DNA of 64,000 nt from Dimorphilus gyrociliatus (taxonomy: Eukaryota > Animalia > Annelida). The DNA lies in contig CAJFCJ010000009.1 of NCBI GenBank assembly GCA_904063045.1, forward strand, positions 1,922,968 through 1,986,967, given 5' to 3'. A program made the translations under genes and the position numbers. Positions within the stretch are counted from its first letter, which is position 1. Every line of letters begins with the position of its first letter. A model generated the notes under the pieces. The model did not search any database. It was not told the DNA's origin and saw nothing but the letters and a program-made list of their open reading frames with translations. Below, one piece after another: positions 18,762-60,071 of the stretch.

Positions 18762-19208
18762 CCTTTTTCTTCTAGCCTCTATAAAGTGTAAAAGAATAAA
18801 TTAAATATTTAGAATTAAGATGCAGTCTATTAAAAGATCTAGTAAAAATTCTAGCTAAATTAACCTTCCATCTTAATTAGGTAGTAATCATAAAAATGAT
18901 ATTTTATTGTTTCTTAACTAAATTCTTTTGGCAGCCATGAAACCAATATGCATAGGAGAATGTAAAAATTCATAGACCTATTTAAGACTGGCCAATTCGA
19001 GCTGCGTAGGTTTTTTTTTTGGCCACTCTATACGCAATTTTTTACGTATAAAATTATAAACAATGATACCGGGAAAGTCCTGTTTATCGTATTACTGCAT
19101 TTAAAAACAATTATCTTTCTTTCTTTTTTATCAAAACGGGAAAAGCAACATAAAAAAAAATAAATCTAATAATTAAGTTTAACATAACATGATACTTTTG
19201 TATATATG

Positions 19209-19212
<4 letters not shown>

Positions 19213-19249
<37 letters not shown>

Positions 19250-19509
19250 TAATATATAATGTTATAGCAGTATATATGGATGACTAAGTTTGTTTCTTTA
19301 TTAATAAAACCTGGTAAAAAAAAAATACATCTGTCTTTAGTTACAAACTAAATTTTTCTTTATATATTTAATATATAATATTCTCGAATAGAAGAGACAA
19401 ACTCTATTATAATAATAATAATAATAATAATAAATTAATACTTCTAAAACAACAAACTTAAATGAATCTATAATAAAATATAATTAAGTAGTCCTATACA
19501 CATAAACGG

Positions 19510-19545
<36 letters not shown>
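19213..19545. repeat. Microsatellite cluster: (TA)n ~19213-19248, (TAA)n ~19409-19433, (TA)n ~19514-19545
   Basis: Read directly in the AT-rich intergenic region between EHBP1 and SLC49A3. Confidence 0.9.
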
Positions 19546-19549
<4 letters not shown>

Positions 19550-35596: not shown

Positions 35597-38175
35597 TTAG
35601 TTAGGTGAAACGCGGGTGGACTTGAATCTGCTCTCCGTCACTACCTTAATTCGTTCATCAGATATAAAATAAACAGCGTAAACTTTCGGGAAGAATAGGC
35701 AAACAACAGTTAAAGCGGCATTAATTATAAGACTAATACTAAGTATAATAACTTTATAATAGGCGTAATACATTGTAAAGTAGGTAGGAAGGAAAACAAT
35801 CCAAAGAAATATCGTAGTTGAAACAGAGACAAAAACAAACCAAGATTCATTAAAGTTTTCTGGTAATTTTCGCGTCAAATAGCCGCAAACTGCGCAGAAA
35901 ATTAATAATAATATATTAAATGACAGAGGCAAAACCAAAGCCGGAAGTGGATTTGAACAGATTAACTCAACTCTCTTCTCTATTTCAACTTTTTGTATTC
36001 TATCCAAGTCGGGTTTCCAAATGATCAAACTTATTATAATCAGAATTACTTCCGTAATTATCGATAGTAACACAAATACCATCTGTGATTTTCCACTTAC
36101 GAATGAAGGTCGTTTGTTTCCCTTTGAACCAGCCTTAAATATTCTATATACTCTCAATGTCTTCACAAACAAAGGTGAGTATATTGTACAAATGGTCATA
36201 TGGAAACCGATGCGGTTGATGACGCAGGTAACAATTGATGGCTTAGTAATAAAGAAAAGAACCGTTACGTAACCCAAACTACATCCGAAGAGTATAATGC
36301 CTGATAGAAATCTTGAAGATGCTTTAATGATTTTCTCCTCCTTGTATACTCTGTATATAACAATTACAAAGATATTCATACTGACTCCAAATCCAGAAAG
36401 AATAATTAGGAGAATTGATAGTGAATCGGACCACTCAACGTATTCACTCTTTATGGGGTGGCATTTACTTTTAGTTTCCTCATCTAGAAAAATTAAGGTC
36501 ACCTTTAGTATCTTAAAAAGCACAATGCAAAATTAATTATTGATTTACCGGGCCAATGGAATAGAGGACACTTTCTACATTCAGTAACATTATTAACAAG
36601 AATTTCATTTTCTCTGCATTCTTTACAAAGCCAGCAACATTGTAATTCTTGTTGTATCCAAATAAACTTTGGCGGACATGGCTTACTGCATATAGATTCT
36701 AAGGTATATTTTTCGTCTATATAAAGAATGTCACCGTCTTGTTTCCATGAGCCAATATTTTTCAAATGTAAAGATGTATTAATATTCCGAAATTGAAGAA
36801 TGTCATATTCTGCGTAGACATCCCCTAGAGCGTTAAATTTGTAGTGAATACCTGAAGATGCTACAAAGTCTTGTTGCCTTAGAAATTTCAACACTTTTTC
36901 CCCGGTGACACAGTCCTATAAAATGACATAGTAGAAATACTTCGTTTGTAATGTTCTAGATTAAAAATAAGAACGATGATACTTAACCTTAAGTCGCTTG
37001 ATATTATAGAAATTTTCAGGGCAAACCGTTGATATTAACTGATGTAAGGATTCAGCATAAACTTCAACGCCATCACCAAGTTTTTGGATAAATGACAATT
37101 TATTTGACCCAAAGTTCCCAGTTTCTGATAAATTATTATAGTTGTGGCAATCATCGTTAAATTTACATTTGGCCAAACTTTCAAATAGCAATTTTGACTG
37201 TTCATCAGAATTGTTGTCAGGTTTCCAAGCAGATAAATAATTGTAAAGTTGCAAATCTTCACCAAAAGGATAGGTTATCTTAATGCCTTTGTCCAGTATA
37301 TGCTCAAATCCTTCTGTATTATAATGATCATCAGCGGATATGAAAATAAATTTTTCGTTCGTTAATAATTTATCTATCTCCTTAAGAAAATTTGGACCGT
37401 CAAAGTAGCTTAGAAGAAAGACGATAATCTTTGCATTTTTATATTTGAAGAGCTTCTTCGCTACATTGACAAATTCATCGGAAACTTCAGGGGAGAACCT
37501 ATGCGAATGGGCGATACATATCCCTCTCTTTTTGGCGTTTTTCTCAAAACTCTTAGCCATATTTTCGCTATAGTGCCCCTCCGAATAGAATAGTTGTACG
37601 TAATTCCATTTAAACTTGACCATCACATTTGTCATAGCTTCAGTGACGAACGAATCAGGTGGCACCAGCCTTGAGAAATAGCCAAAACGTCTCTTATCTG
37701 ACAATTCTTCTGACGTTGCGTGTGTCGCTAATATAGGTAATTGGTATTGGGACGCTAAACCTGCTGTAGGAATACACCTATCTGACAGATATGGGCCAAC
37801 TACACCAATTATTCCTTCACCAAAAGTTTCATTATCATCGCAGAAGTTTGGAAGTAATTCCAAGAGTCTTTGAACAGGTTTATTAATTCCTCCACAAGTA
37901 TCCAAATAGGTAAAGCCAAGTGTAATATTGGGTAACATTTTAGGATTCTTATTTACCTTATCAATACTATATTTAACAACTTCAATTCCCAATCCTAATC
38001 TTCCACTCAGAGATATACATTTGCCACTTGAATAAACAGGAAAGAGAATTCCAATATTTAAATCTCCAATTTGTTTCCAAGTCCTAATTGTTGTTTGAGA
38101 ATTACAAACATATGTAGATAAAACAAGAAAAATTTGTAAAAAGATGGAAATATCAAGTTGCTTAAAGGAAAGCAT
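35597..38175 (-). CDS. Class C GPCR, metabotropic glutamate receptor-like, copy A (3 exons)
   Basis: Signal peptide from ATG 38175; VFT with GDLNIGILF, LPNITLG, GVVGP and ATSEELSDK..FSRLVPPD; cysteine-rich domain CSKPC..CCWLCKEC..C..C; 7TM with KASSRFLS, KLPENFNES and FPKVY. Confidence 0.93.
35719..36355. repeat. 637-nt block identical to 49924-50560 (7TM exon of GPCR A versus B); 35700-35923 is also identical to 53701-53924 (copy C)
   Basis: Line-by-line comparison found no mismatch at offset 14205 (A/B) or, for the shorter block, at offset 18001 (A/C). Confidence 0.9.
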
Positions 38176-39387
38176 AACTGCGAATGAAAAATGCAAACTT
38201 TCCTAAAAGCGCCTGTGTACGCGCGCTTTCTTCGTATGTTAATATACTTAATACACTTCCTATAATGCAGTAGTTTTATATTTATAAATAATTGATACAT
38301 TATTTGAAATGTAAGTAAAATTAACATAGAATATATTAAAGGGAATATCACTCATTAAGTTTTGTATTAGTTAATTTTAATAATAAGCTGTACAAGTCAG
38401 ATAAATAAATGATGTATAAATCTTACTTAATTTTTAATTAATTCACTTGTTTATGATAACAATTATAAAGACTTTTCTATATTAAGATATCTGTATAGTT
38501 CTTGGTATGGAATCGAGTTTCAATACTTTTTCTTGCTCTCTTCTAATACAATAATACTAATAAGTTGTATTAATGCATTGCATGTATATTTTCTACAGTT
38601 TATACATGTAGCGTGTTTATCCCTGACTCTTATAAGTATATGTATAAAGTATTTTTCATTGTTGGCTTCCAGTCTTCAGACAATGAGCATAAAGAAGATA
38701 ATACTAATCAAGAAACGTGTTCCTTCCTTCAGTATTGTATCTTCGGTTAGAATATTGTATATATCTCTAAATAAATTTATATACGAGTAGTTTCAACGTT
38801 CAGCTTCGGAGAATTGGCGTCGACTAAGGCCTAAGTAATATTTGAAGCATCTGGATGCTAATTTTTATTGTCATGAACTATAAGAAAAACAAGGAGAGCC
38901 TCGTCATAGGTCAAAGATTTAAAAATGTGCACGACTAACGTATATTATTTTCATTATTGTAATATGGAAATGTTTCCTAAAAAAAACAAAAATTAGATTT
39001 TTAATAATAATAATTGGCTTTCTATCCTCTTAAAACATACAGAGAGTTATCATTTTGTCAGAGTTTGAAAGAAGGGTTAACACATTGTTTTTGTATATTT
39101 TACAGGAAATTGAATAGTAAGCTTTATATAAATATAAGATATATATATATATATATGCAATGTACTTAATGATCCTCTAATGGAGAATAAAGAAATTATT
39201 TCTAAATTCTGTACTCAAACGAGGTTACGTGTCTATAGCCTAAAACGAGGTCTTTCATAGTGTGAATGTTTATTTATGGTATCTAAGTTAATTCTGACTT
39301 GATTTCTTCAGTCTATTGTATTTGTTTTGCTTTAAATTTCATATATTGAATTTTAATCGATATGAAAATAGTATCAAATTTAATTCA

Positions 39388-39389
<2 letters not shown>

Positions 39390-39418
<29 letters not shown>
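39390..39418. repeat. (CT)n microsatellite
   Basis: CTCTCTC run read directly; another (CT)n lies near 41766-41783. Confidence 0.8.
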
Positions 39419-40330
39419 ATCCTTCTTTCTTTCTTCACGCTTTTATTGAATCATCCTCCTCTACATTTGACAACCCTATGACAATTCCTTTAATCACGGA
39501 TCAATTGATATAGAATTAGAGTTTTAGTCCCGCTGAAGAATGTAAAATACTTGCAAGGAATGAAAAATAGCAAATGCGCAATAAGAAAGAAGGAGAAAGA
39601 GAACGAAAAATAAGAAATAAAACTTTAATGTTCATTTATGTGATTTCTTAATTGATACGTAATAACTTTGATCCATTGCAGTAGTTATGAAAGAAAAAAA
39701 AGAAAGAGCAACTGCAATGTGAATTCTATTCTTTTTTCACAATTCCAATGAGAAAGTTGATGATAACAACGACAATTTTAAATACTAATATTTACTGCTA
39801 TCCATAGTAAAATTAGGCCTAATAGTGCAACAGCTTTGCTAAATGAAAGAATAGTTTTTAATCGTTAAAAGAGTACAGTTTTATATAAAAGAAACTGATT
39901 TTTATGTAAGAAAATCATAAAAAAAATGGAATAATATTGAAAAATTGTTGTAAAGATTTCAATATAAAACTTGGAATATTTAAAATGGTTGTTATTAATA
40001 GTTTCAATATAAGAGAAGGAAGGATAGTTGCTAATATATACAACTATAATAAAAATACACAAAGGAAATCGTCCAAAAAAATTTCTTCACTAGTTTGGAA
40101 TTTAAAAAATGCTATTAAATAGACATAATTATTAATAATCTTTTGTTTATATGTATAAAACATGTTAATACGGTAATAAACAATACGAAAATTTCAGACG
40201 TATTAATAAAAAATGGTAAAATTTTACATCTGATTTGAAATTATCGTTAGGTATAGAATTTAGTAGGCGGCGCTGTTAGTCAGGTTAGGCCTAAGTGAAT
40301 CAATCAGAATTTTCAGAGAGAAAGGAGAGA

Positions 40331-41763
40331 ATGTCGGCGGCTTTCGACTCCCTGTCAAATCTCTTAGATTTTTCAAAGAAAACATCGGTTTTACCATTGT
40401 TTACGGGTTGTACTGCAGCATATATTGTATATTATTTATTATGGCTAGTAAAGGTAAGGGTTTAATGGCAGCTTTTGCTTTGTCCCAGATAGTTGAACCT
40501 TTCTGACCCCTCTTCTCTACTAATGATTTAGAAACCGATTATTGCCTGTAACCCATCAAAGAAGCACTTCCTTCTAGAACGGATGCCTATATTGAAGAGG
40601 AAATTTTGGCCTACAATTTGGTGTACAGGTTACCGACTACAGACAATAGTACGAATGTTTATAAAGGAAAATCCACAAGTTGGATTCGATAGGGAAACTA
40701 TTAACTTGAAAGATACAGGAGAAATAGCTCTAGATTGGCTTCACCCGGAGGAGGATGATGAAAAAAAGTTGATTGTCCTTATCTTGCCAGGATTAGTAGG
40801 TCAGTTATCTAATTTGGAGCATGATAAAATAATGATTAGTGTGCACTTTGACCTTTAGATAACCACATGTTACGTTTGTTATAATAGTAAATTATTATTT
40901 TTTATATAGGAAGTAGTGACGAGAGCTACTGTCGACATTATGCCCAACAGGCCTACAACAGGAACGTTAGATCGGTCGTCTTTAATTATCGCGGAAATGG
41001 TAAGTAAAATACATTAAAAGTTAATCGGCATTCGTCCGATATACAAGTCTGACGGTTTTTGCATATTACAGGAGGCTCCACCCTGAGGACTGCTCGCACA
41101 TACTGTGCCACTTATACCGATGATCTATCGCAAGTTATTCAGCATGTTCAAAAACGTTATCCAAAAAATGCTGGAATTTTGGCAGCTGGCGTCTCTCTCG
41201 GTGGCCTCATTCTTACTAATTATTTGGCAAAGGTTGGAAAAAATTCTGGTATAAAAGCAGGCTTTACTGTATCAGCCGCGTGGAATGTTTTCGAATCTTG
41301 CAAAGCCCTTGAACAACCTATCAATTGGTTTGTCTTTAACCGTCTCCTAGCCGAAGCTCTTATCTCAAAGGTTAAAGAACACGCACAACTTTTCAAGAAT
41401 GAATTTAAGGATAGCTTAGATTTTAAGAAGGTTTGGAATGCTAAAACAATAAGAGAATTTGATGATTCTTTTACCTGCCGGCAATTTGGCTACTCAAGTT
41501 ATGTGGAATACTATGAAGATGCTTGTACTCATAAAAAATTACACCATATACAAACTCCATTATTATGTTTAAATGCCGCCGACGATCCTTTTTCTCCAGC
41601 TCACGCCATTCCCCTTGAAGAGGCCGAAAAAAGTGAGAATGTTGCAATTATAGTAACAGCCAAAGGAGGGCACATAGGTTTTATGGAGGGTATGTGGCCT
41701 TCGGGTGCAAATTACATGGATTTAGTTCTAGCCGAGTATATAGACGTCACTTCCTCTAGTTAA
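40331..41763 (+). CDS. ABHD3: Alpha/beta hydrolase ABHD1/ABHD3-type phospholipase
   Basis: N-terminal anchor; FWPTIWC..YRLQTIVR; DTGEIALDW; LILPGL; VFNYRG; RTYCATYTDDL; nucleophile GVSLGG; IREFD..FT; LNAADDPFSP; GGHIGFMEG. Confidence 0.88.
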
Positions 41764-43086
41764 TACTCTCTCTCTCTCTCTCTGTCTATTTTCTATCGGT
41801 CTCTCTCGTTCGCTCTAGTTTCCATATCTCATAAATAATTAAATTTATTTTTTGGTTGGTCTTCTATGCAATATTCTTGACTCAAATATGAATTAAATAG
41901 GCTAAAAAATAAAGAGGAAGAAGAAAAAAACAGCGCGTTCATTGTAAAAAAAAAACAAAAACAACAACCTAAGTACTTACTTTGCAGAGCAACAATAACA
42001 ACAATAATGTAACTTTCTTCTAGTTTTCTGGTTTTTTTTTCTTTTTTTTTTGCGTCCAAATGTATTGTATTAATAAAGATTACGTAATTATGTAATAAAT
42101 TGGAAAATAGATTTTTTATACATATTTTTTTATCTTATAATTATTTATGCAAAATTGAGCAAAATAAATACAAATTCTATTGCAATAATTATTATTAACA
42201 ATGATGATTATGATGTAAAACAATAAAAGAATAAGTAACTAAAATTACATTCATTATTCATTGTGGAATACGTTCGAGAACATTTTTATAAAGAATAAAA
42301 AACGTATGATAAAGTTGCCACAGCTTGTGACAATAAGATAGAATATTTCATTGAATAATGCTGTATACACGTTTATTGTACTTTACCAAAAATTTCTCGT
42401 TGTTAAGTACATAATGTAAGCCTATTTGTATGTTTGCTTTGTATATAAAAAAAGCCAATATATTCCATACAGAAAAATGTAAATTTCACTAACTAAACCT
42501 TATATATTCATTAGGTCGCTACGATAATTAGAGTATAAGATAATCCAAAAAAATATCTAAAGGTTCGAATCTTATCTAAAAGATTTGTTTAACTGATGTG
42601 CTATTTAATGCACTATAATCGCTCTAAAAAAAGAACGTTTTTAGTGTAGTAAACTATGCAATATTTAAATATATTTTTCCCGCCTAGGTCTAAAGAACTA
42701 TGTTTGTAACGCCATCTATTTTCAAACATATTATATAAAAACTTCTAAATGGTTGAAAGTTAACCTTGAACTTGACGAATATAAGCGAAACAACTCCGAA
42801 GAATAATTGGGGAAGAAAAGTATGATAAACAATAGAATATTTGTTATAATGGTTTATCATTTTAAGAATTTTTTCAACTATTTTTGTAGCATTTAAAATA
42901 GAAGGGAAAATATTTTTAGTGGACTTTGGAATCTGTTTAGCAATAATTAAACAAGAGAGGCTATAAACGTTAGTCTATTTCACATCGACTTTATATTTAT
43001 AAATACAAATATTACTCAAAAGAAATAGTTTAAAAACAACAAAAATTCATATTAATAAATTAAATAAGAATTTGTTTGAACAAACG

Positions 43087-44746
43087 ATGAATCAGGGATT
43101 TTATAAACACATGGCAGCCGCCTCTCTGTTTAAGAGATGCGTTGTTTCTCCAATTCAATATCGTTCATGCAATAGTACAGCAAGTTCTCGGGTTAGATTT
43201 CTATATTATTTATAATTTATATACAATTGAATTAATTATATATCTTTTAATTATAGCAATCAATTAAAGTTCAAGTAGAGGATTATGATCAAAAATGGGA
43301 GAAAATCCGTACAGCAAAGCCTTTTTCTGAATTTTTAACGGATAAATTTAATAGAAAACATAATTATTTGCGAATATCTTTAACCGAACGTTGCAATTTA
43401 AGATGTAAGCGAAATATTCTCCTTATTTCTGTTTGTAGACTCTCATGAAAGTGATAATGAATTTGACATTATAGGTCAGTATTGTATGCCTGAGGAAGGT
43501 GTTCAATTGACACCAAAGAAAAACATTCTAACATATGAAGAAATTATTAAATTGGCAACTATATTCGTAAAAGAAGGAGTAACAAAGATACGATTAACCG
43601 GAGGTGAACCTCTTGTCCATCCAAAAATTATCAATATTATTGGTAAAACCTATATAACACCTTTATTCTTATAAAATCTACTTTAATCTTTATAAAGGTT
43701 CTCTAAATGAATTGAAAAATTACGGTCTTGAAGATATTGGTATTACAACTAATGGAATCACTTTGAAAAGACATTTACCATCTCTAAAAGCTGCTGGTAA
43801 AACGATAAAATAATAACGACATTAATATAAAAAACATACAGTATAATGCTTATAATTCGTTCCTTTTAGGATTGACTCATATAAACGTTAGTCTAGATTC
43901 ACTAATTCCAGCTAAATTTGAGTTCTTCACAAGACGAAAGGGTCATTCAAAGGTGCTTGAAAGTATAGACACTGCCCTCAATATTGGATATAAACCAGTT
44001 AAAGTAAATTAAAGATTATATAAACTAATTGTACCTTTTGTACATAAATAAATACATAGATTTAACGCTGACATTTGTTTACTTTCAGGTTAATTGCGTA
44101 GTTATGAAAAATCAAAATGATGATGAAATATTAGACTTTGTTGAATGGACTAAAGATAAGGTATTGCCAAATGTCTTACTTAATAAAATTATTATCTTTT
44201 ATACTATATATCTCCATTAAGCATGTCGACGTTAGATTTATTGAATATATGCCTTTTGACGGAAATAAATGGAATGACAAGAAAATGATTAAATATTCTG
44301 ACATGTTGAACAAAATAAAAAAGTCTTATCCGGATGTCCAGCGTCAAGATGATGAGTTATCGTCTACCAGTAAAACTTTCAAAATACCCGGCTATAAAGG
44401 ATCATTTGGATTCATTTCCTCTATGACAGAAAACTTTTGTTCTGGTTGTAACAGGCTAAGAATAACAGCTGATGGAAATTTGAAAGTTTGTCTGTTTGGT
44501 AATTCTGAGGTTGATTTAAAAGATCTTTTGAGGAATGGTGGAACCGAAGATGAAATTTTGCAAATAATTGGAGCAGCTGTTGGCAGAAAGCACGCACGAC
44601 ACGCAGGTATGAATTTTTTTTGTCTGGATAAAATATTTTATTTAAATTATTAAATTTTGTTAATTTTTGTTTTTTTAAAAAAAAATGTAGGTATGTTCAA
44701 TATACAAAAGATGAAAAATCGACCTATGATTTTGATTGGTGGGTAA
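43087..44746 (+). CDS. MOCS1: MOCS1A, radical-SAM GTP 3',8-cyclase (MoaA homologue)
   Basis: Basic N-terminal presequence-like exon; [19 protein letters not shown] (CxxxCxxC); [10 protein letters not shown]; [10 protein letters not shown]; [17 protein letters not shown]; ends [14 protein letters not shown] at 44744-44746. Alternative ATG at 43111. Confidence 0.95.
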
Positions 44747-44837
44747 GGTAATTTTTACTAGCATTATTCAATGTTTCTTTAATACTATTTTGCAATTTTT
44801 TCTTCTTTTTCTTCTGTAAAAATTAAAAAAAACCCAG

Positions 44838-45555
44838 ATAAAGTCAAAGAAAGAAATTTTATATATACGTCCTCTATTTACGAAACAAACTATAATTATT
44901 CAATGCAAATTCGAAGATATTGCCATTCAAAATCCAACAATGATGAATACTATACGCAATATAATAAAATATTCCAATCAACAAGTGATAATTACGAAGA
45001 CCATTATAATAACATATTCAATCAGGTATACTCTAGATTTTTATAGATATTCTTTCTAGATATTTGTTTATTACAAATTAGAGTAAATTTTCTCATACTG
45101 ATGAAGAGGGAAGAGCACAAATGGTTAATGTTGGAGAGAAATCAGTTACAAATCGTACCGCTCTCGCCTCTGGAAAAATTCGTCTAAGTTCCGAAGCTTT
45201 TAGGCTTGTTGTTGAAAATAAGCATAAAAAGGGTGATGTATTAACTGTTGCTAAAATAGCCGGAATACAAGGAACAAAACAAACATCAAATCTAATACCT
45301 CTTTGTCATAATATTAATTTGGATGGCGTTGATATTAATTTCGATTTAGACAGGGAAAATAATGAAATTGTTGTTCGTGTATCTATTGAGTGTCATGCCA
45401 AAACGGGTGTTGAAATGGAAGCCTTAGTCGGCGTGTCTACATCATTGTTAACTATCTATGACATGATTAAGGCGGTAGATAAAACTGCTATTATATTTGA
45501 TGTTAAATTAGACAAGAAATTCGGTGGTAAAAGCGGACTGTTTATTAACAAATAG
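44838..45555 (+). CDS. MOCS1: MOCS1B, cyclic pyranopterin monophosphate synthase (MoaC homologue), with linker exon 44838-45025
   Basis: SKFSHTDEEGRAQMVNVGEK, KGDVLTVAKIAGIQG.K.TS.LIPLCH, KTGVEMEAL, IYDM.KAVD, KFGGKSG. The linker exon is open and in phase with exon 45082-45555. Confidence 0.93.
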
Positions 45556-45588
45556 CTTTGTTTTATATACATAGTATATAGAAGAACG

Positions 45589-48500
45589 CTAAAGTTCGAC
45601 GGTAACTGATGTTTGTTTCATAGCATTGTAAATAAAAGTATTGTTGAATGGCACATATTGACCAGTTATGAGTTTAATCGCTTCTTGCGCGGCGCATCCA
45701 CCCATGTAAGCAGCTATAGAATGCATTTCGCACGCGCCGTACCGGCAGCTAAGAGGAGGAAAACAGATAGCATAATAACTAAATACCATAAGCAAAAAGA
45801 GTATTCTAACTTACAACTCGTGAATAAGATCGTCTTTTATACTGCATGTTATCTTCCATTGCTGTAATAGCCTCGTAACACAAGACTAGAATAAAGATAT
45901 CAGTTAGAAATAAAGATAATTTAAGCAAATGTCTATTACCTTAAGGTTCATAATATCATCCTCCACTTCGTATATACCCGGATAATTTGAATAACAGAGG
46001 TAATATCGACTTACAGCTCTTAACAGAACATAATAAACCAGGTCATCGTCCTCGTCCTCAACTCGTTGAGCTAAACAAATAATATCCATTAAGAGAGATA
46101 GAAATGCAATGAAAAAATTCATAATCAACTCTTACCCATTTGCCTTAAAAAGATTGTAGACGGTGAATTGTATTCTTCCGATATTGATCGATATCTCAAA
46201 ACCCGAAGAAAAGCGGCGTTTTTACCTATATTACATAATATATATATATAAATAGACTGAGAAATAAACAAAACAAATACTAATAAATAAATAAATAATA
46301 ACAATAACAATAATAATAATAATACGTTAAACTTACAAAAATTTCTAATTTCCGCTTCCGAAATAATGCAAGGAATCTGTATAATTTTAAAACAAGAAAA
46401 GAATTAAACTAACGATATACTAAAGTCTTAAAAGAAGAAAAACTAAAAATATTAACATTACATAACAAAGAAATAGAATAAAAGAAGAAGCAAAATATTC
46501 GCGTGTGATTATAAAAGCTTTAATAAAAATATTAAAAATTAAAATATTAATAAAATGAGTAAAACTAGTAATACAAAAGAGAAGAAGAAAACATAATTAT
46601 GTCATTTGTATTTAGTTTAGGCGGTACCCACTTAAAATTTTAAACTTTAGAGTTTGGGTACCCACCTCACAGTTGAATTTCAGTAGCTGAAATTAAATGA
46701 TATTTTTACTCTCAATAGTTAAATGTTTATCAAATTTTGTTTAGTTTTACATTAACCTAATAAAAAAAAGAGAAAAAAGAAAAACAAGTATTCAAAATAA
46801 AGAAAATCTTTTAAATTGTTATACTTTATATACATATATATCTATATAGAGATATATGGATTGGGATAGTTTTCCTTGACAATGAATATCTAGACACTTT
46901 ACTAATTTTAATATTGAATATACATTGGATCAGCATCCTTAGCTAGGAAGCTATAAAGTTTTGACTATATGTTTCAGAACAAACAATGACATAAAGAGAA
47001 AATGAAAATATTAATAATTGTTAATTCTATTGTCTATAGAGTAAATTGTCTAGAAATAGATCTCCCAACCAGATATACAATAGAAGTACATATATTATAT
47101 TATTGAATACTTACCGATAAATTTGATACAACATTCTGTAGATGTTTATTAACTGCTTCCACATCTTTCGACGCTTTGTTCCTATAGACCTATATATATA
47201 TATATATATATATATAGAATTGATAAGTTGTACAATGACAAGAAAAACAAAACAAAAACTTATTATTAAAATGAAATTTACTTGTTGAAGTCGTATAAAA
47301 CTATCAGAATCGCTTGTCATGTCCGGAATGACACCTCTCAAGGGTAGGAAACCTATAAAAATAAAAGAAAGAAGTTAATAATAACTGCTGAAGGTTTATT
47401 TAGAAAATCGATTTGGGCTACTGACCTTCTCCTTCGCTTTTAACAAATTCTTTAACAGCCCTAACAAGAATCCAAAATGGTTCAGACTGAAAGAAAGTAA
47501 GTATTACAAGTAAATTATTGATTAGCTATGAATTAAAACAATAATAACCTTATTAACAATATTTATACATTCTGGATCTTCGAAAATATGTTTAACATCA
47601 TCTGGCATCTTTGTTGCTGATAGAGCAGTATTTACATTTCTGATAGCTTCGTCGAAATTTTCTTCCATTTCTGGATTGCCGTCTTTATTGAGGAGAATAC
47701 CTTCAAAAACAATAATCCATTTATAATAACAATAATAATAATAGTAATTTAATTTTACCAGATCTTATTAACTTCTTGAAAGCCTGCTTTTCTTGGTAAG
47801 TTTTAGGGATATTACCATTGTTCTAAAATAATGAATAAGTTAAATGAATAATGTAAAATTATAACTTATTTAAACGATATATAACTTACTTTATTCTTCC
47901 ATATCTCTAGATATTTGTAAACAACAATCAGCCAAGGTATATGACTATGTTCTTTTACATTCATTTTTCCTAAGTCGCAGGCATCACAGAGATCTCTAAA
48001 TTCTTTAAATGGTCTATCTAATCTTAAATCGTCCAAAGCATTATCGGGATGAGACTCTATGACTGAAATTTTAAATAAAGGTATACAATATAACAGTTTA
48101 GAATGTTATTTTTCCTCTCTTTACCAGTATGAACAGGCATAGCAATTCTCATGTAACCGATAAAACCGTAACTAACGCAATGCAAGAATGGCACTTTACA
48201 AGACCATAGATAACTTGAAATTTGGAGTAAAGTTCTCTCATTTAAGTCAGTTGCTATGACAACCGAGAACGTTGAGAAAAATTTGGCATTAACTTGAAAT
48301 AAATCTTCTACATTCTAGAGTAATGAAAAAAATGAACGATATAAAATGAAGAATAAATATCTGTATTGAAGATTTTAGAAAATATTACCTCATCAACATA
48401 ATTAGCTAGAACATCGTCATTAAGTTCTTGGAGTAGCTCGCAGGCAACTTGACCTCGATTCTAAAGAAATTTTATGTAATTATCGCTAATATTATCAATT

Positions 48501-48996
48501 GACAAAAACAATTACCTTTCCAATTGCTGATTTTTCGAGAAAAAAGCTAAATTAAAAAAGAAATTAGATATTTTATAGTATTTAATATTTTTACATAAAT
48601 AACAATGACTTACTTATTTCCTACATCTTCTCCAGAAACTTTATGTCCGTCCACAATTGTAAATGAGCCTATACCTTTTTATAAATATTTATAGTTATAT
48701 GCTGAGTGACAATATTTCTTATTTATTAACCTGGTAAAATCAAATTCTTTAGAATTTCAGTTCCAGTAGCAGTAGCATTAATTAAACAGATTCTAGCTTT
48801 TTCCAATTTTGACTGACCTTGGTCACCCCATAATCTAAAAAAAAATCCTTATTTTAAAATCATCGAAAAAAAGGGGCGATTGAAAATTGGTTAAGTTTGA
48901 TGGAGATTCACAGTCTTCAAATATTTTTTACCTGAGTTGTCTATCGTATTTGTTCGATTTATCTACGGGTTTAGAAGGTGATATGCTACCACTCAT
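45589..48996 (-). CDS. NAE1: NEDD8-activating enzyme E1 regulatory subunit (APPBP1)
   Basis: [57 protein letters not shown]; [17 protein letters not shown]; [41 protein letters not shown]; stop at 45589-45591. Confidence 0.95.
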
Positions 48997-49792
48997 TATT
49001 TGAAATAATAAGCTGCTTCCGTGTTTTCAAAGTGAAGACTGTTACAATTGGTTGGCGTTAAAGCCCTTTTTCTAGCCACTCTACTGTGAACAATTATGGT
49101 ACCACACTATTTGTAATAATAAACTGGTAAATTAATTTCCGCTATAATTCAAAAGACATTTGAAATCTTTCAAAAGAAATATACAGAATGTTTACATGCA
49201 TTGTTTTAAATAACCAAAAAAAAGCTATTTGAAGCGTATCAACAATTGTTGTCTTTTGAAACAATAACTAGGCAGGGGAATTGTGAGAACAACTCGCTGT
49301 ATTGTCTACTACTACAAATAACCTGAAGTGCATTTTTGAAGAAAACTAAATAATAGCACCTCAGTTTCAATACTTTAACAAAATGATAAACAATACAATA
49401 GGATAGTTTCTATACTTATCCAAAATTTCCCTTTATCTATATATCGTTTTATATATGCGTTAAATTTCTTCAAAATCTTAACTGCTAACTTACTTAAAAA
49501 GGATGTATGGAATATTGGAAAAAATACATTACTCATACTCCTACTGAAAATAGAAACCTCATATACAAAAGACTATCATTGGAAATTAGCTTCAAAGAGA
49601 ATTTTCATATACTTCATTAGATAAAATATTATCTTTTATTCAGTCGAACTTACAAACGAGTTTTCTTTTTACGGCATACAACAAGAGCTACAGTAACAAC
49701 AGAAGGACACTCTTTGTTCTATATTTAAAAATATCTCTTGGATGCTTTATTCGCTTAAGTCTTTATCTTCAATCTTTATCTAAACTAAACAG

Positions 49793-52485
49793 TTATGATC
49801 TCGATACTGAGCCAATTTTTGTTACCTTTCCTTTCGAATCTGGACGAATTGTAATTTCTTCATCCGAAACAAAATACAAAGCGTAGATTTTAGGCGCAAA
49901 TAAACAAAGTATTGTTATAAATCCATTAATTATAAGACTAATACTAAGTATAATAACTTTATAATAGGCGTAATACATTGTAAAGTAGGTAGGAAGGAAA
50001 ACAATCCAAAGAAATATCGTAGTTGAAACAGAGACAAAAACAAACCAAGATTCATTAAAGTTTTCTGGTAATTTTCGCGTCAAATAGCCGCAAACTGCGC
50101 AGAAAATTAATAATAATATATTAAATGACAGAGGCAAAACCAAAGCCGGAAGTGGATTTGAACAGATTAACTCAACTCTCTTCTCTATTTCAACTTTTTG
50201 TATTCTATCCAAGTCGGGTTTCCAAATGATCAAACTTATTATAATCAGAATTACTTCCGTAATTATCGATAGTAACACAAATACCATCTGTGATTTTCCA
50301 CTTACGAATGAAGGTCGTTTGTTTCCCTTTGAACCAGCCTTAAATATTCTATATACTCTCAATGTCTTCACAAACAAAGGTGAGTATATTGTACAAATGG
50401 TCATATGGAAACCGATGCGGTTGATGACGCAGGTAACAATTGATGGCTTAGTAATAAAGAAAAGAACCGTTACGTAACCCAAACTACATCCGAAGAGTAT
50501 AATGCCTGATAGAAATCTTGAAGATGCTTTAATGATTTTCTCCTCCTTGTATACTCTGTACATAATAACCACAAAGATATTCATACTGACTCCAATTCCA
50601 GAAAGAATAATTAGAAGAATTGATAGTGAATCGGACCATTCAACGTAATCATCGTTTATTTCATTACATTTCGTTTTAGTTTCTTGATCTTTAAAGGAAA
50701 AGAATTCAAAGAAAATTACACTCTATTATTCTATTCATTTTTTAATAATCAATATATTAGTTATTCATATTTGATTAATAATACAATGACATTTTAGAAT
50801 TTGTTTGCAATGTGTTATATATTAAAATAATGGATAAGGTATATTTAAATGGCTTACCTGGCCAAAAGAAAGTAGGACATTTTAAGCATTCTGTAGCATT
50901 CTTAACCAAAATTTCATTTTCACGACATTCTTTACATAGCCAACAGCAATGAAGTTCCTGTTGTACTCTTATTTGTGTTTGAAGACAGGGTTTACTACAT
51001 ACAGATTCAATGTTGAAATGTGTATTTATAGTAAGAATATCACCATCTTTTTTCCAAGATCCAATATTCTCCTCTGTCCATGATTTGTTATTCCATTTGT
51101 AGTGAACCAGCTCATATTCCCCTAACAAATCTCCTCTGTCATTGAATTTATAATGTACACCAGAAGAGGCTTGAAATTCCTGTTTTCTTAGATACTTAAG
51201 AACTTGTTTTCCGGTAATGCAATACTTAGAAAAGATAACGGATAGTATTTTCTTATGTTAAAGATTAAAATTGTGTTTTAATATTTACCTCTAATAGGCT
51301 TTTATTGAAAAATGCTCCAGGACAATTTGAAGTAATTAGATCATTTAATGCTCTGGAAAAAAGCTCAATACCGTCTCCTAATTTCATTATGTAACTTAAT
51401 TCATTATTGTTATTATATCCAGTTTCTGATAGATTTGAATAAAGAGAGCAATTTTTATAAAATTTACAGTGACCTAAATTCTCCCACAACTCTCTAATCC
51501 AATTATGTTTTGCTTCAGATGGTTTAAGCGATAACAAATAGTCGTTAAATTTTTCATCTCTACCCAAACTGTAAACAAAATTAAAACTTCCATCTTGCAA
51601 GTGTTCAAAGCCTTCGTGTCTAAAATAATCGTCTGCTGAGAGAAAGATAAATTTTTCGTTAGTAACGATTTGATTTAATTCGCTTAAAAATGGAATTCTA
51701 TCGTTGTAAAGGAGAATGACAATCAATATTCTGGCTAGTTTGTATTTTACTACTTTTCTAGCTACTTTTTTATACTCATCTGGATTATCTCCAGAAAATC
51801 TGTGTGAATGACCAATGCAAATTTTTCTCTTTTTTGCATTTTTCTCAATGCTTTTAGCCGCATTTTCGGCATAAGACCCTTCCGAATAAAGTAGTTGAAC
51901 ATATGTCCATCCGTAATCTTCTAATAAATGAGTCATTGCCTGAGTGACGAATGAATCGGGTGGAACCAAACGTGAAAAATATTCAAAGCGGCGTTTGTCG
52001 GATAATTCTTCTGATGTTGCAAATGGAGATACAATAGGTATTTTATATTGAGAGGCAAGACCAGCAGTAGGAATGGACTGATCGGACGAAAACGGCCCAA
52101 CTATACCAACAACTTGGTTAGATGTAGATGAAGTCGATGAATTAGAACAACTATCAGGGACAAACTTAAGGAATCTTTCAGCAGGTGTATTTATTCCACC
52201 ACAAGTGTCTAAGTATATAAATCCAAGTGTTATATTTGGTAATATATTTGGGTTTTGATTTATCTCTCGAACTCTATATTTTACTAATTCTGAACTTAGA
52301 GCTCCACCAGACAATATTTCTTTAGTACAATGACCATTTACTGAATCATAAACTGAATAGAGAATACCAATATTCAAATCGGCTTCTTCTCTCCATTCGT
52401 CATTCCGCAAAATCGCTCCAGAAATTTTATGAATTAACAACAGTGTACAAGTGAAAGGTAAAAAGAGTGTACCGAAGCACTGCAT
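49793..52485 (-). CDS. Class C GPCR, mGluR-like, copy B (3 exons)
   Basis: Same architecture as copy A: signal peptide, VFT exon (51265-52485 ORF), cysteine-rich exon, 7TM exon. Confidence 0.93.
50853..51065. repeat. 213-nt block identical to 54561-54773 (cysteine-rich domain of GPCR B versus C)
   Basis: Direct comparison at offset 3708. The same segment of copy A is clearly different (SKPCPPKFIWI versus SKPCLQTQIRV). Confidence 0.88.
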
Positions 52486-53210
52486 CTTGTTGAATGATTA
52501 CTATCCATGATGGAGAGCGTTGTTGTAGTTTACTTTTTTTTATGATAATATTAATATAAAATGACTTATAAACGCAAATATATATATATATATATATATA
52601 TAGAAATGTGCATATTTAGCATGGATATATCGAAATTTAATCGATTTCTTGGAAGAATATACTATATGTAAATATTGAGTTATTAATTAAGTCACACATT
52701 TATTTTAAAATTAAAAGAGAGAAATATGATTTTCCAAGTTTCAACATAATTTTGTGTTATAAATATCACGATTAATAGATCATTCTATTGTGGCATCTAC
52801 TTTTTAACACTTCGAATAAACAAATTCTCTTAAGTATCATCTCTTATGTCTTATTCTATAAATTCACTTTTGTTTTAATTAAACTTTCAAGTGGGTTAGA
52901 CTATTTTTCTTATAACAAAGAGATTAATTAATACATTATACACTGCCTACACAACACTATATACTGAACATTTTTTTTTTAATAGACGCATTATATAGAA
53001 TTATATACTAAATATAAAATATAATACATTAAATTTAATCGACACTTTTCCATTTGTCTTCTTTAGATATATAATCACTTTTTGTTAAATTCAATGAATT
53101 CGAAGGATTTGAATATTTTCCTATTCTTCTGTCTTTTAAAAGACATTTTTAATATTTAAGTATTTAATACTGTAGTATACGGTATATGTTATTGCTTGCG
53201 TTGTAGAGTG

Positions 53211-53224
53211 ATCGCTATGGCAAC
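53211..53224. promoter_or_regulatory. RFX X-box candidate ATCGCTATGGCAAC upstream of GPCR B
   Basis: Matches the degenerate consensus RTHNYYWTRRNRAC with a strong GGCAAC half-site; 726 nt upstream of the GPCR B ATG. Confidence 0.4.
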
Positions 53225-53570
53225 TCATAAGTCTTTTGATGAGAAAAGACGTAAAGACAAACTATGCAGGTTTAATTTATTAATATTTTTTTATGGTCAT
53301 TTAACCTTATGGTTTCTTTCAAAATGAAGGAAAGTCTCCATTTTACTTTCTAAAGATAACGTACGTAGAAACTTTCTATGAAATTTGTTAGTTGTTTTTT
53401 ATTGTACTTCATTAAAAGTATTCTTTATTATAATTTTTTACTTAAAGGATATAAAGCTTCATTTATTTTAACTACTGTCATATTTTACAATAACAAGCGG
53501 AAAAATTGACGATATAGTATTACAGAATAGAGAATTTAAGGAAAGATTACAAGAAATATATATATAGAAA

Positions 53571-56189
53571 TCATTGTGTTTTGGTAACATGTACAGACGA
53601 TATTGGGTTTATCTTAATCGACAAACCTCTTGTTTCAGTAAAAACTATAAAATCTTTATCATATTTGAACATTACAACATAGAATTTAGGAAAAAATAGA
53701 CAAACAACAGTTAAAGCGGCATTAATTATAAGACTAATACTAAGTATAATAACTTTATAATAGGCGTAATACATTGTAAAGTAGGTAGGAAGGAAAACAA
53801 TCCAAAGAAATATCGTAGTTGAAACAGAGACAAAAACAAACCAAGATTCATTAAAGTTTTCTGGTAATTTTCGCGTCAAATAGCCGCAAACTGCGCAGAA
53901 AATTAATAATAATATATTAAATGATAATGGTAGAATAAAATCATGTAGTGAATTTGAACACGTTAATTCAACTCTCTTCTCTATTTCAACTTTTTGTATT
54001 CTATCCAAGTCGGGTTTCCAAATGATCAAACTTATTATAATCAGAATTACTTCCGTAAATATCAATAGTAATATAAATACCATCTGTGATTTTCCACTTA
54101 CGAATGAAGGATGCTTTTTTCCTTTCAATCCAGATCTAAATATTCTATATACTCTCAATGTCTTCACAAACAAAGGTGAGTATATTGTACAAATGGTCAT
54201 ATGGAAACCTATGCGATTGATGACGCAGGTAACAATTGATGGCTTGGCAAGGAAGAAAAAAACGGTAACATAACCCAAACTACATCCGAAGAGTATAATG
54301 CCTGATAGAAATCTTGAAGATGCTTTAATGATTTTCTCCTCCTTGTATACTCTGTACATAACAATTACAAAGATATTCATACTGACTCCAAATCCAGAAA
54401 GAATAATTAGGAGAATTGATAGTGAATCGGACCATTCAACGTATTCGTCATTTATTTCAATACATCTGGTTTTAGTTTCTTTGTCTTTAAGAGAAAATGG
54501 GTCAAAATATGCAACTTATATTGTTTATGTAATTATTGTAATGATAAATAACGATAGTTTCTTACCTGGCCAAAAGAAAGTAGGACATTTTAAGCATTCT
54601 GTAGCATTCTTAACCAAAATTTCATTTTCACGACATTCTTTACATAGCCAACAGCAATGAAGTTCCTGTTGTACTCTTATTTGTGTTTGAAGACAGGGTT
54701 TACTACATACAGATTCAATGTTGAAATGTGTATTTATAGTAAGAATATCACCATCTTTTTTCCAAGATCCAATTTCTTCTGATATCCAGGAATTATTGAT
54801 CATTATAAACTGAGTTATTTCGTATTCTGCTAATGGGTCACCTCTGTTATTAAATTTGTATTGAATTCCAGAAGAAGCTTGAAAATTCTGATTTCGTATA
54901 TGGAAAAGAACTCGTTCTCCTGTGATGCATGTCTGTTATTTAAGGGAAGCAAAAGTTACTTTTTCAATGAAAACAAGCGTAGAGAGATGTGCAATTGTAC
55001 TTACATTTAAGAGACTTTTATCGTAGAATGCTTTAGGGCAATATTTTTCAATTAGCTGATTTAACGCTCTTGCATATAAATCAGTTCCATCTATATATTT
55101 GTTATAGAATACATATCTATCTAGGTTTTGATAATTAAGTTCAGACAGGGTTGAATAGACTGAACAGTTGGTATTAAGATTACATTTTCCAACGTGTTCC
55201 CAAAATTTTTTCATCCAAACATGCCTAACTTCATTCGGTGTTGTTGAGTGTATACATCTCTGAACTGTATCATAATTACCAATTCGATACCTAAATCTAA
55301 TGCTATACTGTTGAAGATGCTTAAACTTATCAATGATATCGTAGATATCATTTGAAATAAAAATAAAGCTTTCTTTCCCTATTATTTTATTTAGTTCTTG
55401 TAATAGATGATATGCCTCAAAATAGGTTAAACACACAACTACAACCTTTGCCTTTTTATATTTCATTATTGTTTTAACAACATTTTGAAATGCCCTTAAA
55501 GTATACGATGAAATTTTTTGTGCATTCGCAACGCAAATCTCACTATTTTGGACTTCATCTAAGAAATTTTTAGCAAAATTTTCGCATTGCGTTACTTTCG
55601 AATAGAGCAATTGAACATATGTCCATTTCTTTTCTTTTAGAAAATGAGCCATTGCTTCTGTAATAAAATTATCAGGCGGTACAAGACGAGAAAAATATTC
55701 AAATCGAGTTTTGTCAGATAGTTCATCAATTGTAGAATAAGATCCAATAAAAGGCATTTGAAAATAAGATGCCAAACCTGCTGCTGGAATTGCTCGCACA
55801 GATGTTGCACCACCTATAATACCAACATATCTATTTGAAATGGAACTTGAATTGTTGTTTGTGAAGATTTTGCTTAATTTTCCAACTTCGGCATTAGATC
55901 CACCACAAGTATCAATGAAGTTCAATCCAATTGTTAAATTTGGTAATAAAGTCGAATTTTTGTTTATTTCTTCAATGTTTTTGTAAACACAATTAGCCAT
56001 GAAACTATAAGCACTGTTAAAGCTGCTTAAACATCTGTTTCTTCTCGAATAGCGAATAGAATGAAGGACTACGATATTTAAATCGCCTTTTTTCCTCCAT
56101 TCGTTTATGTTTAGGTCTATACTCAAAATCTGTGTATATCTCAATGAAAGAATGTAAGTCAATATAAGGTGTATACTGAAAGGCGACAT
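53571..56189 (-). CDS. Class C GPCR, mGluR-like, copy C (3 exons)
   Basis: Same architecture as A and B; the most divergent VFT of the three. Confidence 0.92.
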
Positions 56190-56850: not shown

Positions 56851-59800
56851 ATGAGTGGAAGAATTTTACAATCCTCAAGCAGAGGAAGATTATTTGAATC
56901 GAATTATCCACCAGGTACAAGTGGTAATTCTAGACAGACTGGAAAATACCCTGAAATTCGGCAGAGAGGGTATTATTCTGATGTTGTTGCTAAAGAAGCG
57001 GAAGAATCTTTAAATGTATGTGAAATAATTTAGATTATTGAGCTATTATATTTAAACCAAAATATTATAGAATGTTCAGCATGGACCGAACGCTCAGCAA
57101 CAAACGGTATGGAACGCCAGCAAGGAAATGCACATGCCGAATGTCCATACATTTGCCACTCCAGAAGAGAGCGAATTTTTAAAAGAAATTACAGCTCATA
57201 GCCAGCAGCACGGTCCTTCTACTAAAATTCAAGCAATTTCAGTAAGAATCATGTATTTTCCTTTGTTTGACTGCTTTATATAGTAGAATTTTTTCTGTAG
57301 GACTTTCCTGAGAAGGCATATCAACCAAAAGTTCAGCTTCCTTTCCTAACTCCTCCTGGTCATTGTCCTCGTAAAGTGGAAATTGAGAGGAGGAAACGTC
57401 TATACAGTTCACAGAGTTTGGAAGCTCTATTGATAAGTGAAAAAATAGATATAGGCTGCCTTATGCCCAAAGATTTAACGGATGGAGAAGAACATGTACA
57501 ACTAAATGCTGATCCTTCTAATCCAGCTCCTTTTTCTCCTTTTCTACCACTTCACACTTTTGATAATACTGAGTATGATATTAGAACGGAACCAGAATGG
57601 CTAACTCTTGGATACGAGGGAGAAGAGCGTAAACCAGTTCCCGCCAAGGCCCTGTTACCTACTAGAGATGATCTTCATCATCTCAGTGTTAAGGATGCAA
57701 CAATTGAATACGCTTACAGTGATGTAGGAGTTCTTGATTATAATCAAGAAAATCGTTTATATCTAGTTCAAAAAATCGACAAAAGTGGAAGGGTTGTTGC
57801 AGAAAATGCTGATAAAGATTTGCAGTACTGGATACCAAGAATCCAAATAATGTTTTGTGCAGAAGATCCAAGAATTTATGCTAAACGAGTGGCATTCGCT
57901 TATAAATTCAGAGAAGAAACAGAAGCTTTCCTCCGTTACCAAATGTATGTTGATTGTATGCCTATGGAAGGTGTTGGAGAGCTGGATCAAGCTAGTCTTA
58001 AAAGAATGATGGAGTGGGCCAAGGGATGTCCTTCACTGTGTCGTGATAAGTCACTTGACGATTATATGCAGGTTTTGGAGAAAGAAGTCAATATAGACTT
58101 TTGTAGGTCAATGAATAAAATCATATTTGATAAAACTGTCATATCTAACCCGGGAACATTCGCTTTCGTTCGAATACCTATCGAAGAAGAGCCAGAAGTT
58201 CCAGAAAAAGCCTGCTGTCTAGACATTCCAGAATATCCTTATGATGAACAATATGACAAATTCGCATTCAATTCTCTCTTGACAAGAGAGGAGAGTATAA
58301 ACGCTCTGGTAAAAGTTGGAACTGAATGCAATAAAGTGGCTTCTATGTCTCTCTTCCATGTACCTATGCCCAAGTATATGAGATTAGAGGAATTCGAACA
58401 AACTCAAAGCCAGAATACAGCCCAAACCGCTCTTTATCTCAAAGATGGATGGAAATTAGCATTAAAAAATGCTGTTAGAACTTGTCTCAGAGACGTTGGA
58501 AAAGGTTGGTTTAACATACACGAGACTAATTGGAATGTGTATCAAGTATCTAAAATGAAAAAATTAATGGAAAGAGTTAAATTTAATATGCAAGATTCAC
58601 TGAGATTCCTTGTTCAGGATTCCCTAGTCGCCTTTACGCAAATGGTTGTTGATGCTTCCAGATGTACGTTTGAATGTGAACCTGAAATGGAATGGGGCAA
58701 CGATCTAATCCAATCTCCATACAAGTAATTGAAACTTTTAAAAATTGCTTAAATGCCATTGTTAAATAACATTTGATAATAATAACTTCTCTTTATTAAT
58801 AGGCCAAAGAAGAATGCAATATTCTTTATGGATCTCGTCATTGATGCTGAGGGAGTTCATTTTAGCACTTTGTTGGGTAACTTTGAGCAAGTTTGCATCA
58901 ATTTATTCGATAAAGGAATCTCTTCAACTCAAAGTGTACCTCAATTGGAGAAATATGTAATGGAAGATTTAAATTTTACTGGTACGCCCCTTTTAGAATC
59001 TGTCGGCGAACACGAGCCTCCAGTAGAGGAACTACGTAACACTGTTCGACATGCACTTAAATGTTCACTTGTACCTCTTATTTCATATTCCAAAGAGTAC
59101 GAACAATTTGTCGAATTAATAAATTTGGACGTGAATGCGTATTGCAAAGAATACAACGAAAAAGAGCACACTGCTCAAGAAGTTCAAGCAGATGTTGAAA
59201 AGCATTTGACTGAAAAGGATCGTATAGAGGGAATCCTTCCAAATAATATTGTTATTGGCCCATATTATCTTAATACTGAAGGAGTTCGTCAGGCGATATC
59301 AAAAAAATGCAAAGCTTTATCAAATGCTCTGCTAGAACTGTTAGCTACCAAACTAAGAAAGCAAGCTGACGAAGCTTGCGAAGAATTCAAAACTTTCGCC
59401 AGAAAACTATACGAGAAACCAAATTGTATAGAAGAATTAGCGGAAATGAGAGAATGGATGAAAACAATACCAGATAAATTAAAGGAACATCAAGAGTTAA
59501 TTGATAAAGCTATGGTGGACTATGAGCTAATAGAAGAGTTCTATTATAACCTTTCTCAGGAAGATTTTAATACCAAGTGGACAACTGTTGGTTGGCCACA
59601 TAAAATTGAAATACAAATGGCCCAAACATACGAACAATTAGAGGAAGAAGAGGAGAAATTCCACAAACTACAATTATCGGATCAAACTACATTCAACGAC
59701 AAATTAGATTCTCTAAGTATGGCTGTGGCTGGTCTAGCCGGCTATACAGATCTAACAAGAGCACATGAAATCGCTAATGAAGTGAGAAGATTACATAAAC

Positions 59801-60039
59801 AGCTTAAAGAAGCTCAAGAACAAGCTGCAATCTACAATAACAGAGAAAGATTATTTGGGATGCCAGTTACAAATGTAAGTATTTTCCTTTGATAATTTAT
59901 TCTCACCCAACTAATATAAACTTTATTCTAATAATTATAAATTTATCCATTTGTATATTCCATTATATATCTTATACTGCATTATCCCTTAAAGAAATAC
60001 TAAGGAATTACTGCATTTATATACTTATTATTTATATGG

Positions 60040-60071
<32 letters not shown>

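Follow-up and report, generated by a model that had tools for sequence, protein, structure and literature searches.

In a window of 64,000 nucleotides from the annelid Dimorphilus gyrociliatus (the whole stretch analysed here, on contig CAJFCJ010000009.1, C9), three class C G protein-coupled receptor (GPCR) genes, named A, B and C (DgyrCDS7744, DgyrCDS7748 and DgyrCDS7749), carry stretches of perfectly identical DNA in the exons for their cysteine-rich domain (CRD) and seven-transmembrane (7TM) core, whereas the exons for their ligand-binding Venus-flytrap (VFT) domain, their introns and their C-terminal tails are very different. This pattern very probably originates from recurrent interlocus gene conversion at the DNA level, which stays within the CRD-7TM core of old paralogues resembling metabotropic glutamate receptors (mGluRs). 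Small, fully resolved and unusually clean, the trio exemplifies domain-restricted concerted evolution among receptors.

The three genes lie on the minus strand and have one common architecture of three exons, with every frame open (Table 1). Exon 1, of about 395-399 codons, gives a Pfam match to ANF_receptor, the Venus-flytrap domain (E-values of 1e-39 to 8e-42 across the trio); exon 2, of exactly 367 nt in each gene, encodes the end of the VFT and NCD3G (1e-13 to 4e-13); and exon 3 holds a full-length 7tm_3 match (1e-56 to 7e-51) followed by a short tail. The corresponding values for gene A are 5.9e-42, 4.4e-13 and 1.3e-56. Intron 1 is in phase 0 and measures 64-72 nt, and intron 2, in phase 1, has 65 nt in A, 169 nt in B and 81 nt in C. 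With VFT, NCD3G and 7tm_3 in this order, and consistent frames and phases, A, B and C are class C GPCR genes. Searches were made exon by exon; exon 1 of gene B, the query of a word search, matched DgyrCDS7748 of Dimorphilus gyrociliatus at 100%.

A sequence-only reading of this DNA had listed three identical blocks of 637 nt (A and B), 224 nt (A and C) and 213 nt (B and C), and direct comparison recovers them without a mismatch (637/637, 224/224 and 213/213). The A=B tract runs from transmembrane helix 1 (TM1) to the middle of TM7, only C differing inside it, and the A=C tract from TM5 to the end of TM7; 205 nt are common to all three genes (35719-35923 in A). The last 19 nt of the A=C tract encode an A/C-specific end of TM7 from which B departs, so that INAALTVVCL in A and C stands against INGFITILCL in B, a difference already pointed out in that reading; the TM7 end of B is like the family-typical state found in two relatives, E1 and E2. 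The B=C block takes in the final 208 nt of exon 2 together with GTAAG, the start of the donor site, and covers the entire NCD3G and about 19 codons upstream of it; A differs there at 59 sites, and in the 5' part of exon 2 B and C are only ~65% identical. Self-BLAST and a three-way genomic alignment likewise bear out the reported dissimilarity of the remaining parts: nucleotide identity is ~55-70% in the VFT exons, introns 1 and 2 are unalignable, and C-tails and flanks are at background identity, while identity reaches 84-100% between B and C in distal exon 2, and over most of exon 3.

When each variable site of the trio is assigned to its odd-one-out gene, a mosaic is directly observed. In exon 2, a three-way mix over the first ~140 nt is followed by 59 consecutive sites at which A alone is odd. 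Exon 3 starts with ~45 mixed nt, a B-odd patch and an all-identical stretch, continues with a 345-nt zone in which C alone is odd (40 sites) and with the 205 nt identical in the three genes, and ends with nine B-odd sites at the TM7 end before a tail in which all three diverge. Inside the C-odd zone, the differences of gene C cluster in four main islands, each 16-43 nt long, and two isolated synonymous differences lie between the first island and the second; the perfect stretches that divide them reach 74 and 92 nt (P about 0 for this clustering in 20000 simulations). The islands map to the end of TM2 and extracellular loop 1 (ECL1), to intracellular loop 2 (ICL2), to TM4, and to ECL2 and the start of TM5; they are 59-75% identical to A and B, which is the level of VFT divergence, and 17 of 31 codon changes are non-synonymous. 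Since synonymous and non-synonymous changes are mixed in them, these islands are to be read as unconverted relics of the old divergence and not as new mutations.

Chance is excluded as the source of the concordant runs. In a Sawyer-type permutation, in which the variable sites of the trio were shuffled 10000 times and the longest concordant run was scored, the runs observed were 40 (A-B), 59 (B-C) and 9 (A-C), the shuffle maxima were 13, 14 and 11, and the observed run was reached in 0, 0 and 3 of the 10000 shuffles. Nei-Gojobori counts give a proportion of synonymous differences (pS) of 0.65-0.77 in the VFT exons of every A/B/C pair, that is, saturation, with a dN/dS ratio (omega) of ~0.2-0.35; in the CRD exon pS is 0.77 for A-B and A-C versus 0.29 for B-C, and in the 7TM exon it is 0.14-0.25 overall and 0 within the blocks. 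The earlier argument that synonymous identity inside the blocks goes beyond what selection on the protein can do is upheld by these values. Protein-level purifying selection does not make such blocks in the D. gyrociliatus genome, because paralogues outside the trio that have the same TM5-TM7 motifs are only 64-70% identical to it in nucleotides, and another class C cluster is free of blocks.

The proposition that no single tree fits all segments holds inside the trio. Segment trees do switch, grouping B with C for the 3' part of the CRD and A with B for TM columns 213-561. A, B and C form a single clade for each of the three exons, and the incongruence concerns the order inside that clade and the lengths of the branches, the tree path from A to B amounting to 1.18 substitutions per site in the VFT versus 0.12 in the 7TM. 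Approximately unbiased (AU) tests on the segment trees are non-significant in short mixed segments and not applicable where rows are identical; the argument for incongruence is based on site patterns and permutation, not on AU tests.

The duplication itself can be dated relative to speciation. In the VFT tree, a sequence of another species (P0003) pairs with A at 63% identity with support of 100/100, and a second one (P0002) pairs with B at 77% identity, against an A-B VFT identity of 53%. The matches from this species are single-exon open reading frames (ORFs) from genomic assemblies, and they read into the intron as genomic DNA would. Since a separate VFT orthologue of A and of B exists in that species, the A/B duplication is older than the speciation, and the perfect 637-nt A=B block must be far younger than the duplication.

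A patchwork with changing partners is found, with tract ends inside exons and unalignable introns between, in paralogues lying 1-14 kb apart. Short identical tracts with switching partners in old paralogues are the signature of interlocus gene conversion, and the patchwork conversion of CRD and 7TM put forward in the sequence-only reading gains from the saturated VFT, the partner switching, the permutation and the VFT orthologues. In the process proposed, homologous repair would repeatedly copy short stretches from one paralogue into another, with tracts from tens of nucleotides to ~0.8 kb in A, B and C and of 1.15 kb in E1 and E2. As copying would be limited to the cysteine-rich domain and the seven-helix core, the core would evolve in concert, and the VFT exon, the introns and the C-terminal tail, being beyond the converting zone, would keep their old paralogue-specific sequence. 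Tracts may stop where homology has decayed (introns, VFT and tail): past conversion would keep the core alike enough for further conversion, and the VFT, introns and tails would have drifted, or been selected, out of reach. Selection could also purge those conversions that overwrite paralogue-specific ligand pockets, the ICL2 and ECL2 islands of gene C, or the tails.

The same pattern recurs in a second pair. Relatives of the trio in the same subfamily (D1, D2, D3, E1 and E2) are located on contigs C1 and C5; their TM5-TM7 protein motifs are nearly the same as those of A, B and C. In the tandem pair E1/E2, pS falls from 0.67 in the VFT to 0.19 in the CRD and 0.026 in the 7TM, and a single tract of ~1.15 kb, nearly 100% identical (4 differences), starts at column 51, in the first third of exon 2, crosses the whole of intron 2 and stops where TM7 ends. 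Because this tract includes intron 2, the template of the E1/E2 conversion appears to be DNA and not spliced RNA. The 3' limit at the TM7 end falls within ~40 nt in A-B, A-C and E1-E2, which is the principal, though indirect, hint that selection or decayed homology sets the border of the module. No homogenisation is found in D1/D2 (7TM pS 0.66), and the other class C cluster, at 3.25-3.27 Mb of contig C1, has a uniform 66-82% identity with no perfect blocks.

Several explanations compete with gene conversion. Whole 3' exons might have been exchanged or re-duplicated between paralogues, in one or few events, by unequal crossing-over or exon shuffling, the latter having been offered as an option in the sequence-only reading. 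The homogenised part does correspond roughly to exons 2 and 3, the E1/E2 block is single, continuous and takes in an intron, and the B=C block ends at the donor site of exon 2. However, the A, B and C introns around and between the blocks are unalignable and of different lengths (65, 169 and 81 nt), exon 3 is divergent over its first ~45 nt, as are the tails, and a crossover would homogenise all sequence distal to its breakpoint too. Moreover, tract ends fall inside exons, the identical partner switches three times in ~1.2 kb, and old islands survive in gene C. Such a swap of modules is therefore unlikely, and exon shuffling finds no support, with tract ends within exons and introns and tails that the trio does not share. 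Still less likely is that consensus calling, short-read polishing or the collapse of reads created the blocks. Polishing with mis-mapped reads can homogenise near-identical paralogues, and for this reason the 100% blocks may in truth begin or end at slightly different positions; it is, however, unable to raise ~60% identity to 100%, and gene C-specific islands persist inside the homogenised zone. The assembly was built from PacBio long reads, with an N50 of 2.24 Mb (PMC7854359); all three copies are on one 2.7-Mb contig between unique genes, and the blocks, of at most 0.84 kb and with unique flanks, are far shorter than PacBio reads, so that single reads span them. No extra haplotig copies were found in the assembly, and the pattern appears independently on contig C5 and is absent from the other class C cluster. 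Although the support is indirect, the blocks are thus probably real in the DNA of the organism.

A very different history would start from a recent duplication, after which the VFT diverged adaptively and very fast while strong purifying or nucleotide-level selection kept the 7TM alike; conversion would have no part in it. The ligand-binding domains of chemoreceptors often evolve fast, and the tree of each exon joins A, B and C in a single clade. Against this, VFT synonymous sites are saturated at an omega of only 0.2-0.35, the introns are unalignable, purifying selection leaves no more than 64-70% nucleotide identity for the same motifs in other paralogues, a single history cannot give partner switching along an exon, and A and B are each closer in the VFT to an orthologue from another species than to each other. 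As the duplication predates speciation, this combination of recent duplication and fast VFT evolution is excluded by the trees, and its probability is taken as negligible. An equally slight chance is given to conversion templated by RNA, in which spliced transcripts of a paralogue would serve as repair template. Of intron 2, the B=C tract includes only the first 5 nt, which are the consensus GTAAG, and no intron sequence is common to A, B and C. Nevertheless, all three genes keep their introns, the start of exon 3 was not converted along with the end of exon 2 between B and C (82% identity over the first 45 nt), and the E1/E2 tract passes through intron 2 at 100% identity.

Some observations weigh against DNA-level conversion, or against details of it. 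The end of the B=C tract within 5 nt of an exon-intron junction could hint at a template derived from RNA. No rise in GC content at third codon positions (GC3) was found when converted parts were compared with unconverted parts and with paralogues, and donor and recipient are not distinguishable. The role of selection in setting the tract limits is inferred only from their recurrence in three pairs. Lastly, no 7TM ORF of the A/B/C type was found in the other species with full-exon and 130-residue queries, the former returning only D3-, D1- and E-type ORFs (P0020, P0021 and P0022) and the latter nothing; short-read contigs broken at homogenised repeats may be the reason. Of the classic pattern, in which the 7TM groups by species and the VFT by orthologue, the VFT half is what the tree displays.

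Regional conversion as such is well documented. The variable exons of the clustered protocadherins of fugu and zebrafish have undergone repeated, lineage-specific regional conversion (PMC1852091; also Noonan et al. 2004, as cited in that paper). Like A, B and C, these are tandem paralogues with a diverged 5' recognition part, and their 3' membrane-proximal part is >99% identical in nucleotides, synonymous sites included, the argument being the same as for the trio. They differ in being cadherins rather than class C GPCRs, in belonging to a different animal group, and in that GC3 is raised in the converted parts of the fugu genes, which is not seen in A, B and C; in the latter, in turn, the converting zone extends over two exons and forms a fine patchwork among only three genes. 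Among fish OlfC (V2R-like) genes, conversion was detected with GENECONV in subfamily 9 (PMC6588630). These genes share with the trio the VFT, CRD and 7TM class and the arrangement in tandem arrays, and conversion was detected by a comparable statistical test, but that paper describes no domain-restricted pattern of core versus head, which A, B and C show. The V2R/OlfC likeness suggested in the sequence-only reading is probably a functional analogy only, for the nearest solved structures are mGluR2/3 rather than CaSR/T1R-type receptors. The worm array is tiny (3 + 2 genes). Loci with shared constant exons (protocadherin, UGT1-type) likewise end up with a variety of heads on a common core; unlike in these, each of the genes A, B and C has its own physical copy of CRD and 7TM, and sameness is kept up by recombination and not by splicing. 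The D. gyrociliatus genome paper makes no mention of gene conversion and calls the GPCR repertoire conserved (PMC7854359), and a text search combining 'class C GPCR' with 'gene conversion' gave no relevant literature match. New here is the core-versus-head conversion pattern in this receptor family and in an annelid, while the process, regional gene conversion, is well known.

With regard to the receptors themselves, the best matches of A, B and C among solved structures are mGluR2/3 (VFT E 2e-37, 7TM E 5e-44), and mGluRs (E 1e-37 to 1e-44) rank far above CaSR (1e-27) and T1R (1e-12). Domain order is also that of mGluR2/3. To map the pocket, gene B was aligned to human mGluR3 (native numbering), with the ligand contacts listed in PMC6080095, and the positions were carried across the subfamily. 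The contacts with the alpha-amino-acid backbone (Ser151, Thr174 and Asp301) are invariant in the subfamily. In contrast to mGluR2/3, the distal-carboxylate contacts are replaced: the Arg68/Lys389 positions hold G/F in A, S/Y in B and M/F in C, and Arg64 is retained in A only. The three basic residues Arg64, Arg68 and Lys389, which together with the backbone contacts would mark a glutamate receptor proper, are therefore in none of the three genes found as a set, and A, B and C are mGluR-like orphans, probably sensors of the amino-acid type. At the Tyr222 position gene C has Gln.

The positions of Arg64, Arg68, Tyr150, Ala172 and Lys389 differ among A, B and C; at the variable pocket positions B is identical to P0002 and A is nearly identical to P0003. 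Because pocket residues are paralogue-specific yet kept between species, the VFT heads are distinct, old and stable, and not rapidly diversifying. Of the earlier notion of a diversifying sensing module, many inputs are supported by the paralogue-specific pockets, but rapid diversification is contradicted by the low omega and by conservation between species. The 'one output' attributed to the family was overstated. ICL3 and TM5-7 are identical, but the C-tails, of ~20-30 residues and very short compared with mGluR2/3, are all different and mutually unrelated, and gene C has islands in ICL2, where it differs at five residues, and in ECL2/TM5. With a shared core, transducer coupling would be similar without having to be identical, and dimers might be compatible. 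A, B and C amount to a natural experiment that bears on which parts of a class C receptor different sensors can have in common, and they reveal no new mechanism.

Another member of the subfamily is organised differently. At the D3 locus (contig C1, 85-95 kb), three VFT exon sets in a row are followed by only one CRD exon and one 7TM exon, which corresponds to the shared-exon design. Two of the D3 cassettes have orthologues of their own in another species, the second in P0009 and the third in P0005, and P0005 seems to lie on one 7.6-kb contig with the D3-type 7TM (P0020). A tentative and rather doubtful idea is that the subfamily is under selection for one CRD-7TM core with many heads, reached in one small genome by two routes: A/B/C and E1/E2 would be homogenised by recombination, whereas D3 would share its exons. 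If so, a common core may let obligate class C dimers form between paralogues, leading to combinatorial amino-acid sensing, and the limits of conversion (CRD start, TM7 end and the ICL2/ECL2 islands of gene C) would be functional module borders kept by selection.

The public gene models of the trio deserve a comment. The public proteins of A, B and C have 655, 643 and 580 aa; all three models remove as an intron a 71-nt stretch (GTAAGT...AAG) inside the 7TM exon, with a shift of frame after which the three proteins end ...PSFFDHLETRLG. The genomic frame is open across TM4-TM7 of all three genes, with the full 7tm_3 match, which argues that the models are probably truncated or that removal of the 71 nt is an unproductive or alternative splice, the actual splicing being putative. 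GTAAGT is peculiar to A, B and C, D3 having GTAAGC. In practical terms, trees of these receptors based on the 7TM mislead and VFT exons are preferable, and for DgyrCDS7744, DgyrCDS7748 and DgyrCDS7749 short-read mapping and expression counts are ambiguous over the core.

Table 1. Positions of the receptor genes, identical tracts, related loci and neighbouring genes (window positions unless a contig or locus is given)
Feature	Position	Strand	Basis or remark
Gene A (DgyrCDS7744)	35597-38175	-	ORFs, Pfam, splice sites and phases read from the sequence; match P0004
Gene A exon 1	36988-38175	-	VFT
Gene A intron 1	36916-36987	-	
Gene A exon 2	36549-36915	-	VFT end and NCD3G
Gene A intron 2	36484-36548	-	
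Gene A exon 3	35597-36483	-	7tm_3 and tail, stop included
Gene B (DgyrCDS7748)	49793-52485	-	ORFs, Pfam, splice sites; exon 1 100% identical to P0001
Gene B exon 1	51289-52485	-	
Gene B intron 1	51225-51288	-	
Gene B exon 2	50858-51224	-	
Gene B intron 2	50689-50857	-	
Gene B exon 3	49793-50688	-	
Gene C (DgyrCDS7749)	53571-56189	-	ORFs, Pfam, splice sites; match P0011
Gene C exon 1	55005-56189	-	
Gene C intron 1	54933-55004	-	
Gene C exon 2	54566-54932	-	
Gene C intron 2	54485-54565	-	
Gene C exon 3	53571-54484	-	
A=B perfect tract, 7TM exon	35719-36355 = 49924-50560	-	
A=C perfect tract	35700-35923 = 53701-53924	-	
B=C perfect tract	50853-51065 = 54561-54773	-	
Gene C relic-island zone, 7TM exon	53925-54270	-	islands 54246-54270, 54111-54136, 54059-54074, 53925-53967
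71-nt stretch inside 7TM exon	A 36030-36100, B 50235-50305, C 54031-54101	-	public proteins versus open 7TM frame
Tandem pair E1/E2	contig C5:3081352-3087443 (locus L071 1352-7443)		same subfamily
D3 locus, VFT exon sets	L070 1122-2304, 4230-6051, 7539-8762		
D3 locus, shared CRD exon	L070 9375-9722		
D3 locus, shared 7TM exon	L015 1453-2337		
P4-type ATPase (flippase)-like	32323-34146	+	ORF translation alone
Alpha/beta-hydrolase-like	40295-41763	+	ORF translation alone
MOCS1-like molybdenum-cofactor gene	43486-45555	+	ORF translation alone
NAE1-like gene	45589-48036	-	ORF translation alone
Dynein heavy chain-like	57376-58728	+	ORF translation alone

The window is AT-rich (31% GC, 0 N) and belongs to a genome of 77.9 Mb. 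B and C are separated by a gap of 1.1 kb, and A is 11.6 kb off, with three unrelated genes between; none of the neighbouring genes is receptor-related. An AT-rich element of ~60-90 nt was also observed in direct and inverted copies with 75-85% identity (window 15527-15627, 19192-19568 and 60009-60112), one copy of which is self-complementary (15537-15626).

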